Shown here: in pieces, positions 3,960-8,238 of the stretch | How the letters are laid out: the number at the start of each line of letters is the position of its first letter | Numbering within the stretch: the first letter of the stretch is position 1 | Assembly: GCF_902713615.1 (NCBI RefSeq) | Contig: NC_052146.1 | Location: 237,659,827 to 237,723,826 of the forward strand | Source: Scyliorhinus canicula | Taxonomy: Eukaryota | Direction of reading: 5' to 3' | Length of the DNA stretch: 64,000 nt | The notes under the pieces: generated by a model | Seen by the model: the letters and a program-made list of their open reading frames with translations, nothing else | Databases searched by the model: none | What the model was told of the DNA's origin: nothing | Program-made: the position numbers and the translations under genes

Positions 3960-4151
3960 AATATTTTGTTTGCTGATCAAAATGATGGTGCGAGGATCAA
4001 AATAGTAGATTTTGGATTTGCAAGAGTTAAGCCTTCTGACAGCCAGCCATTGAAGACGCCGTGCTTCACTTTGCTATATGCAGCTCCTGAGATTTTCAAG
4101 CAAAATGGTTATGACGAGTCTTGTGACCTTTGGAGTCTTGGAGTAATATTA
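3960..4151 (+). CDS. RPS6KA5: MSK-family kinase (RPS6KA5-like), internal exon of the C-terminal kinase domain
   Basis: ttgacag|AAT...TTA|gtaagt, 192 nt. Encodes [44 protein letters not shown]...[14 protein letters not shown] (DFG, the MSK activation-loop KTPCFT, APE). Orthology to RPS6KA5 is uncertain; see findings. Confidence 0.93.
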
Positions 4152-4444
4152 GTAAGTATATGGAATGCTTGTAAATTGTTGAATAAAATATTTTTGAAAG
4201 ACAAAATGATATTGCAGTGATTGTCCTTCCAAGTGTGGAATTTGGATTTTATCCAACTGGGCAGAACTGAAATCCGAGTCTTGAAGTACTTGTGGGGATT
4301 CTATATCCGTCATCTTCAATACAATTTCACATCAGAAATTAATACTGAATTGTAGTTATGCCTGGAGAGACTGAGGAATAGCCAATTTACAAAATGTATT
4401 TATTACGAACCGACTGCTGCAGCCAGTGTGAGCATTGAAGTGAA

Positions 4445-4602
4445 AGTTTTGAAGTAGGCTGATCCAGGGAAGGATGTAGTTTACACCATCCTGACATACA
4501 ACTATTGTCCTGATCCATTCCTTAGTTTTGAAGTAGGCTGATCCAGGGAAGGATGTAGTTTACACCATCCTGACATACAACTATTGTCCTGATCCATTCC
4601 TT
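4445..4602. repeat. Perfect 79-bp tandem duplication
   Basis: 4445-4523 is identical to 4524-4602. Confidence 0.95.
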
Positions 4603-5187
4603 TTTTATATAAATTTAGAATACCCAATTATTATTTTCCAATTAAGGGCCTAACCACCTATCCTGCACATCTTTGGGTTGTGTGTTGAGACGCATGCAGA
4701 CACTGGGAGAATGTGCAAACTCCACACAGACAGTGACCCGGGTCCTTGGCACTGTGAGGCAGCAGTGCTAGACACCATGCTGCCCTGATTCATTCATTTT
4801 TATTTTCTTGCAGAGGTCATTGTTCATTAACCTACTGTTTTAGCCGTTTTAAAAATGTAATCCCTTGAATTGTGGGAATCAATGACAAAGTCAACACTTA
4901 CTGCCCATCTCTCATTGTCCTGAGAAGGTCGTGGGTGTTTTTCTTGAACTGATGCAGTCAATAGTTTGTTGTGGGTTAACGCAATTGAGTGCTTGCCTGG
5001 CCATTACAGGATGCAGTTAAGAGTCACCCATGTTTTTGTGGAATGACCGTTACATACAGGCAGGAGTGGAAAAGCACAGGATATTTTCTTCCCCACAGAG
5101 CATTAGTGAACCAATGAATTTTTAGCACAATCCAACAGTTTCATGGTCACTTTTTGTGATGCTAGATTTTTTTGAACTGAATTAGAG

Positions 5188-5872
5188 TCATAAATGTTTA
5201 CAGCATGGAAACAGGCCCTTTGGCCCAGCTGGTCCATGCCGCCCAGTTTCTATCACTGTGCAAGTCCCACTTGCCTGCATTTGGCCCATATCCCTCTATA
5301 CCCACCCTGCCCAAGTAACTGTTTAACTGCTTTTTAAAGGACAAAGTTGTACCCGCCTCTACCACTGCCTGTGGCAGCCCGTTCCAGATGCTCATCACCC
5401 TCTGTGCGAAGAAATTTCCTCTCTGGTCTCTCTTGTATCTCCCTCCTCTCACCTTAAACCAATGCCCTCTAGTTCCAGACTCCTCTACCTAAGGTAGATG
5501 TTGACTATCTTCCTCATCAATGCTCCTCATTATTTTATAGACCTCAATAACATCACCCCTAAGCCTCCTACACTCCAGGGAAAAAAGTCCCAGCCTTTCC
5601 TTATAACTCAGACCATCAAGTCCTGGTAACATTCTCTTAAATCTCTTCTGCACTCTTTCTAGTTTAACAATATCCTTCCTGTAATAGGGTGACCAGAACT
5701 GAACACCGTATTCCATGTGTGGTCTTACCAAAGTCTTGTACAACTTCAACAAGACGTCCCAGCTCCTCTATTCAATATTCTGACCAATAAAATCTAGCAT
5801 GCTGAATGCCTCCTTCACCACCCTGTCCACCTGCGACTCCACCTTCAAGGAGCTATGAACCTGTCTTCCTAG
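5188..5872 (-). mobile_element. CR1 LINE 3' fragment in a kinase intron
   Basis: LYKTLVRPHMEYGVQFWSP...LERVQKRF...RRLRGD; 3' tail shared with the HE1-type SINEs. Confidence 0.88.
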
Positions 5873-6506
5873 AATTAAAATTTTCAAATTGCCATGGAGG
5901 AAGTTGAAATCCTATTTTCCCTTGATTATTATTCCATGTCTCTAGATTCCAGTAACAGTACTAAATTTACCCAATGTTTAGACACGAGACCAAAATGGTC
6001 TGTTACAAGTTGCTCGAAAACCACTTTCAGTGTTCGTAATTGACTATTGATAAATTCATGTGGAAATGGAGGAAAAACTACCTTGGTTCTTTTCTTCCCC
6101 TGTCCTAATCATTTCCCATTTTCATCACTAGAAATGTATTCTCTTACAACAGGGAGTGCATCACTGTAAGAGATGATGAAACTTGAATGATTTACAATAC
6201 TGGCTATATGTCGTCCCTTGGCCCTCGAGACTAATTGGTCACTGCAAGGTTTTCAAATAGAGAAAGAAAAAGAGGTAGATTTAATGTTCTGCTAAATTGT
6301 TACAAGATATGGTTGTCTCATCCAAGAATTGCCAAAACTTGTTTCTGATACTGGCTAGCAAATTTCAAAAAGCTTTGGGATATGAAACAACCATCTGATA
6401 AGAAATTATGGATATCTGTAAAATTGATTATTTCTACTCCTCACCCAAATGTTTTACTGCTTAAAAAGTAGCCTTTTATAATGCACTGTGTTTTGCTGTA
6501 TTCTAG

Positions 6507-6663
6507 TATACAATGTTGTCAGGACTGATCCCTTTCCAAAGTATGCAGCAAACAGTAATATCAAGAACTGATGAAATAACAAAAACAATAAAGGAGGGGA
6601 ACTTTATACTTGCCGGGGAAACGTGGAACAATGTTTCACAAGAAGCTAAGGAACTTGTGCAAG
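6507..6663 (+). CDS. RPS6KA5: RPS6KA5-like kinase exon
   Basis: ttctag|TAT...CAA G|gtaatg, 157 nt. YTMLSGLIPFQ...ETWNNVSQEAKELVQ; phase is compatible with both neighbouring exons. Confidence 0.92.
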
Positions 6664-6947
6664 GTAATGTACCTTTCAATCTTTACCATTTGGATCAAAT
6701 TGTTCTGAGTGCTGTAATAAAACGTATGTAAGCTAATAATTATATAATTAATTATTATTTATTGCACTTGCTCTCCAGGGCATTGAACTGGTTAGGGAAC
6801 ATAACAATAAAATTGTGACAACAACATCTGCTCCTAAAGCCATACAAAAAAAGATTATTTATCTATAAATCTATAATTTATCGAACAGTTCTTTTTTCAA
6901 ATGTATTTATTAGCTTTGAAGTAATGACATTATATATAACTCTATAG

Positions 6948-7102
6948 GTTTACTTACTGTGGATCCAAACTCTCGTCTGAAGTTATCCAGCTTAAGTTTC
7001 AACAACTGGTTTCAAAAAAGCCACTGTTTGTCCTCTACTCCATTGATGTCTCCAAATATTCTTGAACCATCCGCCAATAGCTACTTCAAGTCTTCTTGTA
7101 TG
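6948..7102 (+). CDS. RPS6KA5: RPS6KA5-like kinase exon (not in the ORF track)
   Basis: ctatag|GT TTA...ATG|gtaaga, 155 nt. (G)[51 protein letters not shown] matches the MSK GLLTVDP...PLMTP region. Confidence 0.9.
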
Positions 7103-7971
7103 GTAAGATCTTAAGTCTTAAATCGGAAACTCTGGCCAATTTAAACTGGAGTGATCGGTAATGCATAGGCATTGGATTGTTAATTTACTTCAAAGCAAAG
7201 TTTTTAAAAGTTTAAAAACAATTTTGAATATTTTCAAGTAAACACAAATATTGCCGTAACAAAGCTACCACCAAGGGTTAACTTGAAACTTTATTTCCCC
7301 CTCCCTGCAAAATGGGTAGTTCTAGCTTTTCTATACTTTTCAAAATGTGACAAGGTTCCTTCCAGTTGCTCAGCCCATCCAATAACTGCTAACTAGGACA
7401 GCAGTAGGGATTCTACATATGGGGTTGTCACCCTGGGTTAGGGTCGGGAAGATAAACGTGCTAGAAATCTGTGTGCAAACATTTCTTAAGGAGTGCATTG
7501 GTTTTGACTGTTGAGTAATTCGATTTGTTCATGAATAATTGCCATTTGGATTAGGTACTTTAGTGTGCCCACCAGCTTTCAAACTGTACTCCAGCAGAAA
7601 GTTGAAGACCTTCAGGAGGGTAGAAAATTGGCAAGCAGAAATAGATACTCATGGCATTTTACATGTTTTCAGTGTTTGTCAGGCCACACCACATCCATTT
7701 TAAAAATGGGAGCAGCTTTAAAAAAATTGACAATTAGAAAAGAATCTGTGATGTGGCCTTGCCAGTCCTTGAAAATGTTATCAAAGTTAGACAAGATAAT
7801 AGTTTCTGCATTGTGAACAGTTCGTACTATTAATGAAATAAGTTAACTTAATGCCATCATCCAACATTCGCAAATCCAGTTAGGAGATCTTTACAAAATT
7901 ACTTTATACTATGTTGCACTTCTTGTATCGAGAGCATATTCTTTTTTTTTTAATATTGCTTTCTTATTTAG

Positions 7972-8238
7972 GCCTTTAATAAGTACAAGAGAGAAGGATT
8001 TTTCCTCCAAAGTGTTGAAAATGCTCCTTTGGCAAAGAGGCGAAAGATGAAGAAAAGTAGCACAAGTACAGAGACTCGGAGCAGTTCAAGTGAAAGCTCG
8101 ATTTCTTCCTCATCCCAGTCTCATGGCAGAACATCCCCTGTATGCATCGTCCAAGTTCCTTTACCAGCAAAACAATCTGTTTGTGTCTTCCAGTTTTCTG
8201 AAACTTTAGATAGTAGCTTCAATGATACTTCTGTCTAG
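7972..8238 (+). CDS. RPS6KA5: RPS6KA5-like kinase, terminal coding exon
   Basis: atttag|GCC TTT AAT...TAG. AFNKYKREGFFLQSVENAPLAKRRKMKKSSTSTETRSSSSESS: MAPK-docking/NLS LAKRRK motif and Ser-rich MSK1-type tail. Confidence 0.93.
   Translation, partial: AFNKYKREGFFLQSVENAPLAKRRKMKKSSTSTETRSSSSESSISSSSQSHGRTSPVCIVQVPLPAKQSVCVFQFSETLDSSFNDTSV

Follow-up and report, generated by a model that had tools for sequence, protein, structure and literature searches.

To our knowledge, the mitogen- and stress-activated kinases MSK1 (RPS6KA5) and MSK2 (RPS6KA4), which contain two kinase domains each, are regarded as making up the full vertebrate complement of nuclear kinases that connect ERK and p38 with CREB and histone H3. 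Cartilaginous fishes retain duplicates that mammals have lost, and a third MSK in this group would therefore be unsurprising in kind. Here, we analyzed a 64,000-nucleotide stretch of the catshark Scyliorhinus canicula genome (C1:237659827-237723826, hereafter the window) and the MSK-type kinase gene whose last four exons occupy positions 3960-8238 of its plus strand, which we refer to as the window MSK. All genome searches were conducted on the 4.22-Gb, 646-contig assembly. The window most probably contains the 3' end of an intact third vertebrate MSK gene, which is the whole-genome-duplication copy belonging to the CCDC88A block and a paralogue of RPS6KA5 and RPS6KA4.

Four exon-like open blocks, flanked by AG/GT (exons A to D; see table), encode a continuous 256-residue MSK C-terminus. 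This confirms the initial annotation of the window, which had described an intact four-exon MSK C-terminus with a KTP activation site and a LAKRRK docking motif; the two sites read LKTPCF and LAKRRKMKK. Exon A matches Pkinase with an E-value of 8e-17 and carries DFGFAR as well as the activation-loop site KTPCF. The stretch quoted in the initial annotation (FQSMQQTVISRTDEITKTIKEGNFILAGE) is located in exon B, exon C has a 3-residue deletion relative to both MSK1 and MSK2, and exon D, which ends with a TAG stop at 8236-8238, shares 65% identity with the last MSK1 exon of the same genome. Using the catshark MSK1 protein as a probe, we could identify 12 additional coding exons 5' of the window (C1:237583838-237649575). 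With exon boundaries set by hand, the assembled gene comprises 16 coding exons (C1:237583838-237668064; 2313 nt), with AG at every acceptor and GT at every donor, and its 770 codons contain no internal stop. Pfam searches exon by exon revealed Pkinase, a second Pkinase, and Pkinase_C between them, i.e., the two-domain architecture of an AGC kinase followed by a CaMK-like kinase, and a full-length alignment to MSK1 and MSK2 was obtained. The catalytic motifs are kept in the N-terminal domain (GTGAYGKV, AMKVLKK, YRDIKLEN, and DFGLS) and in the C-terminal domain (GEGSFSVCRKC, HRDLKPEN, and DFGFAR), which also applies to the regulatory sites, namely the SFCGTIEYMAPE loop, YSPAALP, FKGYSFVAPS, LKTPCF, LMSP, and LAKRRKMKK. 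LMSP replaces LMTP by a T-to-S exchange and is still proline-directed. Peculiar to the window MSK are the 3-residue deletion, which precedes the AFNKYKREGF helix, the replacement of ATF by SSC, and a 12-residue C-terminal extension (ETLDSSFNDTSV). With its two-domain architecture and all regulatory sites present, the gene is a member of the MSK subfamily.

When exon A, exon D, and full-length MSK1 were searched against the whole genome, only two MSK loci appeared, the window MSK and a gene at C2:8536446-8693366. The exons of the latter match the S. canicula MSK1 protein residue for residue, and its C-terminus is that of canonical MSK1 (...GFCLQNVDKAPLAKRRKMKKTSTSTETRSSSSESSHSSSSQSHGK...FQFSD). 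True RPS6KA5 is a separate locus, located on a different chromosome than the window MSK, and the separate RPS6KA5 that the initial annotation had suggested to look for is present. Exon A is 75% identical to the MSK1 of the genome, and the next-best loci, which are RSK-like or more distant, reach 41-49%. Among solved structures, exon A matches best to 3KN5, the human MSK1 C-terminal kinase domain (109.6 bits), whereas RSK1 scores 60 bits and MK2 56 bits. The window MSK shares 70-73% identity with MSK1 whether the latter is taken from sharks, coelacanth, amphibians, birds, or mammals, and its highest overall identity (72-74%) is to MSK1 proteins. Such near-equal identity to MSK1 across vertebrates is the pattern expected of an old paralogue.

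A maximum-likelihood tree, as proposed by the initial annotation, was calculated from 35 proteins and 786 columns under LG+C20+F+G4 with posterior mean site frequencies (PMSF). Gnathostome RPS6KA4, including three elasmobranch sequences, grouped in a clade (100/100) whose species order was as expected, and MSK1 formed a 99/98 clade. The window MSK was found outside both clades, among the vertebrate MSKs and apart from the invertebrate outgroups (100/99), and was joined to the RPS6KA4 clade at 94/91. Constrained topologies were compared by approximately unbiased (AU) tests. A clade of the window MSK with elasmobranch RPS6KA4 (log-likelihood (lnL) difference 40.3, p = 2e-4), with shark RPS6KA4 (lnL difference 119, p = 8e-6), or with chondrichthyan MSK1 (lnL difference 32.5, p = 0.0185) was rejected in each case. 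A position as sister to all MSK1 was not rejected (lnL difference 8.6, p = 0.10), and the window MSK may therefore be nearer either to MSK1 or to MSK2.

As the terminal branch of the window MSK is long and unbroken (0.38), we added a model-independent check of diagnostic columns, defined as sites at which the two crown clades differ, with polarity taken from lamprey and invertebrate sequences. Of the 11-14 RPS6KA4-derived sites, 8-11 are ancestral and 3 derived in the window MSK. Among the MSK1-derived sites, 5 are ancestral and 2-3 derived in this protein, and it has none of the three diagnostic states of chondrichthyan MSK1. A relocated, fast-evolving RPS6KA4 would be expected to decay to random residues and not to regain ancestral ones, so the ancestral pattern counts against relocation. 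Furthermore, the window MSK is not unusually fast, as its root-to-tip length of 0.415 is below the 0.47 of Stegostoma RPS6KA4; the value for catshark MSK1 is 0.18. The window MSK branches below the elasmobranch-osteichthyan RPS6KA4 node and outside crown MSK1, i.e., its divergence predates the split between cartilaginous and bony fishes.

The gene neighborhood was analyzed next to the sequence itself. The initial annotation had placed the window MSK on the same strand as MTIF2 and convergent with PRORSD1, and this arrangement was recovered, with a tRNA_edit match on the minus strand and an IF-2-type exon on the plus strand. The PRORSD1 exon is 92% identical to PRORSD1 of the sawshark Pristiophorus and 88% identical to that of Narcine, and the gene adjoining PRORSD1 bears an IF-2 domain in Narcine, bowfin, Xenopus, and duck. 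On the other side, the PP4R3 domain was found at two loci only in the genome: C1:236425647-236453482 (+), ~1.1 Mb before the window MSK, and C2:7760275-7817185 (+), 0.7 Mb before MSK1. For CCDC88A, we used as a probe the bowfin exon with the Girdin GBA motif (GSPGSE..LQQFLEES), taken from a 1887-aa HOOK_N protein that abuts PRORSD1. Its sole catshark match (C1:237433732-237434013, +; E-value 3.8e-8) lies 150 kb upstream of exon 2 of the window MSK and on the same strand, in line with the suggestion of the initial annotation to look for CCDC88A immediately upstream on the plus strand. These positions yield the order PPP4R3 paralogue, CCDC88A-like gene, MSK, PRORSD1 (-), and MTIF2 (+). We take the human order at 2p16.1 to be PPP4R3B, CCDC88A, PRORSD1P, and MTIF2, so that the C1 block would be the same order with an MSK added; the C2 block presumably mirrors human 14q32 (PPP4R3A ... 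RPS6KA5). Genome searches with Pfam HOOK and HOOK_N returned HOOK1-3 and one locus on C16 and missed CCDC88 genes on C1 or C2. The C16 locus is a lone HOOK_N match outside the HOOK1-3 loci (C16:79738684-79738854, +; 55 bits), which may represent the N-terminus of CCDC88B. None of our searches revealed an MSK-like exon on C16 closer than ~15 Mb (64.75 Mb) to this match.

Features of the window, with positions counted from its first nucleotide
Feature	Position	Strand	Description and evidence
MSK exon 14 of 17 expected (exon A)	3960-4151	+	64 aa, NILFADQ...LGVIL; AG/GT; subdomains VIb-IX of the C-terminal kinase domain
MSK exon 15 (exon B)	6507-6663	+	closes the C-terminal kinase domain, ends in phase 1; AG/GT; tblastn to catshark MSK1
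MSK exon 16 (exon C)	6948-7102	+	GLLTVDP through the LMSP proline-directed site; AG/GT; alignment
MSK last coding exon (exon D)	7972-8238	+	MAPK (mitogen-activated protein kinase)-docking/nuclear-localisation motif LAKRRKMKK, Ser-rich tail, 12-residue extension, stop
Probable 3' untranslated region (UTR)	8239-8800	+	indirect evidence from contig sets
PRORSD1 main and last coding exon	22417-22839	-	141-codon open reading frame (ORF), covering 141 of the about 170 aa of the protein; tRNA_edit, E-value 8.8e-23
ORF with the MTIF2 exon for the G1 motif, IF-2 GTPase domain	60272-60511	+	GHVDHGKT in IF-2-type context; GTP_EFTU, E-value 4.6e-7

In the equivalent locus of bowfin, Xenopus tropicalis, and tufted duck, annotated MTIF2 and PRORSD1 are followed by a HOOK_N gene (1887-2087 aa) within 6-8 kb, and tblastn revealed no MSK exon between PRORSD1 and CCDC88A in any of the three. 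In X. tropicalis, this interval contains an annotated 124-aa gene (L042:17725-18153, +) with no Pfam domain and no similarity to MSK. The bowfin CCDC88A-like protein beside PRORSD1 (L039:18172-19269, -) ends with ...EYGCV, a PDZ-binding motif. At a C-terminus, such a motif is usually associated with Daple. A long Girdin isoform with a PDZ-binding motif has been reported (PMC8042451), and the bowfin C-terminus agrees with it. In Narcine, RPS6KA4 starts 8.5 kb past a 1434-aa, CCDC88B-sized HOOK_N gene on the same strand of chromosome CM072949, i.e., on another chromosome than PRORSD1-MTIF2 (CM072945). The next gene after RPS6KA4 in Narcine (L041:109099-114248) and likewise in Stegostoma (L040:52545-52747) is a bZIP_1 gene of ~305 aa with the same orientation, which could mark the CCDC88B block in other cartilaginous fishes. 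The neighbor of lamprey MSK has an Nsp1_C domain and is uninformative. Order and orientation are the same in the paralogous blocks, with PPP4R3, CCDC88A-like, and MSK on C1, PPP4R3 and MSK1 on C2, and CCDC88B-like and RPS6KA4 in Narcine. MSK lineages that each lie beside a different CCDC88 paralogue are as expected for whole-genome-duplication copies. The claim of the initial annotation that this gene is the sister gene of the CCDC88A block and not true RPS6KA5 is largely supported by the MSK1 locus on C2, the synteny, the tree, and the AU tests. The findings named beforehand as speaking against such an origin were a gene nested in RPS6KA5, a genome with no other RPS6KA5, and CCDC88C-like synteny; we observed a gene outside the RPS6KA5 clade, a second locus that is RPS6KA5, and synteny of the CCDC88A type.

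With regard to MSK2, a turtle RPS6KA4 fragment used as a seed recovered RPS6KA4 from tetrapods, coelacanth, bichir, paddlefish, and teleosts, and in the same search "alpha-5-like" proteins of the sharks Stegostoma, Chiloscyllium, and Hemiscyllium and of the ray Narcine. The window MSK is 67-69% identical to the RPS6KA4-type proteins from this search. Orectolobiform sharks and Narcine do have RPS6KA4, which in Narcine lies beside the CCDC88B-like gene. True RPS6KA4 is named "ribosomal protein S6 kinase alpha-5" or "alpha-5-like" in Stegostoma, Narcine, coelacanth (XP_064408004), and snapping turtle (A0A8C3SAR3), and MSK gene counts by name are therefore unreliable. The S. canicula assembly contains MSK1 and the window type, and RPS6KA4 is present in Stegostoma and Narcine. 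The separate RPS6KA4 that the initial annotation expected in the catshark was not found in our searches of the assembly. Its designation of the gene as a candidate "third" MSK holds for gnathostomes overall, but in the catshark genome only two MSK loci were detected.

Expression was assessed by comparing contig sets from runs that have no library type on record. Positions 7972-8800 of the window, i.e., the last exon plus 560 nt, were wholly or nearly wholly contained in 19 contig sets (46-164 million letters, 8 studies). The adjacent intron was found mainly in other, mostly larger sets, several of which comprise 1.3-1.9 billion letters and are guessed to be DNA. Among the intron holders listed, 4 of the 19 last-exon sets reappeared, with word shares of 0.15-0.61. 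Ten of the 19, including the smallest ones (46-75 million letters), were absent from the list for the intron. As indirect evidence, the pattern of last exon and 3' flank is suggestive of a mature transcript.

Several points weigh against a third MSK gene of this origin. The CCDC88A identity of the upstream gene is based on one exon match at 41% identity, plus synteny. Support for the link of the window MSK to the RPS6KA4 clade reaches just 94/91, and the AU test also admits a placement as sister of all MSK1 (p = 0.10). A window-type orthologue from another species was recovered neither by a representative search with exon A, which returned mostly exon-sized fragments, nor with amphioxus MSK and turtle RPS6KA4 as seeds, which returned only MSK1 and RPS6KA4. 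As no orthologue was recovered, the long unbroken branch could distort the placement, and comparisons among the paralogues are saturated with respect to dN/dS. An RPS6KA4-type locus was not found in the S. canicula assembly by three independent searches, including those with N- and C-terminal probes of Stegostoma RPS6KA4, which reflects either a loss in the lineage or a gap in the assembly, and the three MSK genes are so far known only from several genomes combined. An MSK exon is absent from the 10 kb beyond Narcine PRORSD1, but the gap between MSK and PRORSD1 is 14 kb in the catshark. Exon 1, which has ~20 codons in relatives, and the promoter were not found within the 124 kb upstream of exon 2 by scans for motifs, for an ORF plus donor, and for CpG islands. 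Lastly, no run recorded as RNA contains the last exon of the window MSK.

Some of these points are what would be expected if the window MSK were an RPS6KA4 orthologue that moved from CCDC88B to PRORSD1 and then diverged, so that sharks would have two MSKs only. The assembly has two MSK loci and no further RPS6KA4-like match, the two types are so far known from different species, the tree joins the window MSK to the RPS6KA4 clade, and a few residues of the MSK2 type are present, e.g., NIL, GFFLxSVENAPL, and MAFN. However, grouping with elasmobranch or shark RPS6KA4 is rejected by the AU tests, the ancestral residues at most RPS6KA4-derived sites would not be restored by faster evolution alone, and the root-to-tip length is no longer than that of shark RPS6KA4. 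The insertion would also have had to occur exactly at the paralogous slot and on the strand of CCDC88A. As the three genes are known only from several genomes combined, relocation retains some weight, but we consider it unlikely.

A duplicate of RPS6KA5 that is specific to cartilaginous fishes and was inserted beside PRORSD1 would fit the overall identity, which is highest to MSK1 proteins, the Ser-rich tail (KKSSTSTETRSSSSESS), which resembles that of MSK1, and the sister position to all MSK1 that was not rejected. However, the window MSK is equidistant (70-73%) from the MSK1 of shark, coelacanth, bird, and mammal, a clade with chondrichthyan MSK1 was rejected, the diagnostic states of chondrichthyan MSK1 are lacking, and the MSK1-like residues are mostly ancestral states. 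This origin appears very improbable to us. The gene could also be a decaying or silent relic that is intact in appearance, for which the missing exon 1 and promoter and the lack of RNA-recorded runs could be cited, together with the segment of the tail of the C-terminal kinase domain (CTKD) in which three residues are deleted and ATF is changed to SSC. A relic is hardly compatible with 770 open codons, canonical splice sites in 16 exons, and the retention of all motifs since before the split of sharks and bony fishes. Moreover, the last exon and the 3' UTR are complete in contig sets from several studies, most of which are not listed for the adjacent intron, and we give this explanation the smallest chance of the three. 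An intact third MSK gene that arose as the CCDC88A-block copy remains the best explanation of the locus.

As every regulatory element of an MSK is kept, a mode of action like that of MSK1 and MSK2 is most likely for the window MSK, judging from the conserved motifs. LAKRRKMKK would serve as the docking site for ERK or p38, and the docked MAPK would phosphorylate the KTP activation loop of the C-terminal domain as well as YSPAALP in the linker. In a second step, the C-terminal kinase is predicted to phosphorylate the hydrophobic motif (FKGYSFVAPS) and the SFCGTIEYMAPE loop, by which the N-terminal AGC kinase would be switched on and could act on CREB- and histone H3-type substrates in the nucleus. 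Regulation may differ where the sequence departs from its relatives, namely in the stretch that connects the C-terminal kinase to the docking motif and in the C-terminal extension. For the evolution of the family, we lean, with a little better than even confidence, towards a scenario in which jawed vertebrates ancestrally had three MSKs, one per CCDC88 paralogue. The CCDC88A-linked copy would be a working and independently regulated nuclear stress kinase in at least some cartilaginous fishes and would have been lost in at least three bony lineages (frog, duck, and bowfin). The catshark lineage perhaps lost MSK2 instead, in which case a reciprocal loss of paralogues would have left catsharks and mammals with a second MSK that is not orthologous.

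In full-text literature searches, a third MSK or an MSK ohnologue of the CCDC88A block was not described. Zebrafish rps6kal has been listed as a paralogue together with rps6ka4 and rps6ka5 (PMC5896114), which is a candidate lead only. Public gene models for the window MSK very probably exist under the generic name "alpha-5-like". A third ancient MSK paralogue would alter the reconstruction of the ERK/p38-CREB/histone H3 signaling module at the base of vertebrates, and would be useful for comparative genomics and for the study of kinase evolution. It would also provide a clean additional marker for the 2p16/11q13/14q32 paralogy (CCDC88A, B, and C). Automatic names conceal non-orthologous genes, as shark RPS6KA4 is tagged "alpha-5-like" and the window MSK probably likewise. 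If S. canicula is truly without RPS6KA4, comparisons of "MSK2" between shark and mammal would involve different genes.

Regarding repeats within and around the gene, the intron between MSK exons 14 and 15 contains an almost perfect tandem duplication of ~78 bp (window 4447-4602; ttttgaagtaggctgatccagggaaggatg...). A repeat of ~300 bp at window 2347-2668 is present in very many copies on all chromosomes at 88-92% identity and appears to be a young, high-copy, SINE-like (short interspersed nuclear element) family; partial inverted copies lie nearby at 670-990. Farther upstream, in the first intron of the MSK or the region before it, C1:237534145-237538251 (+) comprises an ORF of 1369 codons without a break, in which parts resemble endonuclease and reverse transcriptase, as in ORF2 of long interspersed nuclear elements (LINEs), and this element may have been active recently.

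Compared to the known kinases, the window MSK shares with MSK1 the two-kinase architecture and the exon layout, as well as the SFCGTIEYMAPE loop, YSPAALP, GYSFVAPS, KTPCF, and LAKRRKMKK followed by the STSTETRSSSSESS tail. It differs in its locus, as the MSK1 of the genome lies on C2 and is preceded there by the other PPP4R3 paralogue, in a root-to-tip length ~2.4x that of shark MSK1, in its position outside the MSK1 clade, and in the T-to-S exchange at LMTP, the 3-residue deletion, and the unique extension. RPS6KA4 has the same architecture, has NIL(F/Y)AD, FxGL(N/D)W, AKELV, and MAFN...GFFLxSVENAPL in common with the window MSK, follows a CCDC88 paralogue in the same orientation, as the window MSK does, and forms its nearest clade in the tree. 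However, the window MSK is outside this clade, which already holds elasmobranch members, lacks most of the clade-defining substitutions, and neighbors the CCDC88A-type set of PRORSD1 and MTIF2 instead of a CCDC88B-like gene and a bZIP gene. RSK1-4 (RPS6KA1, RPS6KA2, RPS6KA3, and RPS6KA6) likewise combine two kinase domains with a MAPK docking motif at the C-terminus, but by identity and by the bits of the structure matches they are far more distant from the window MSK than MSK1 is.

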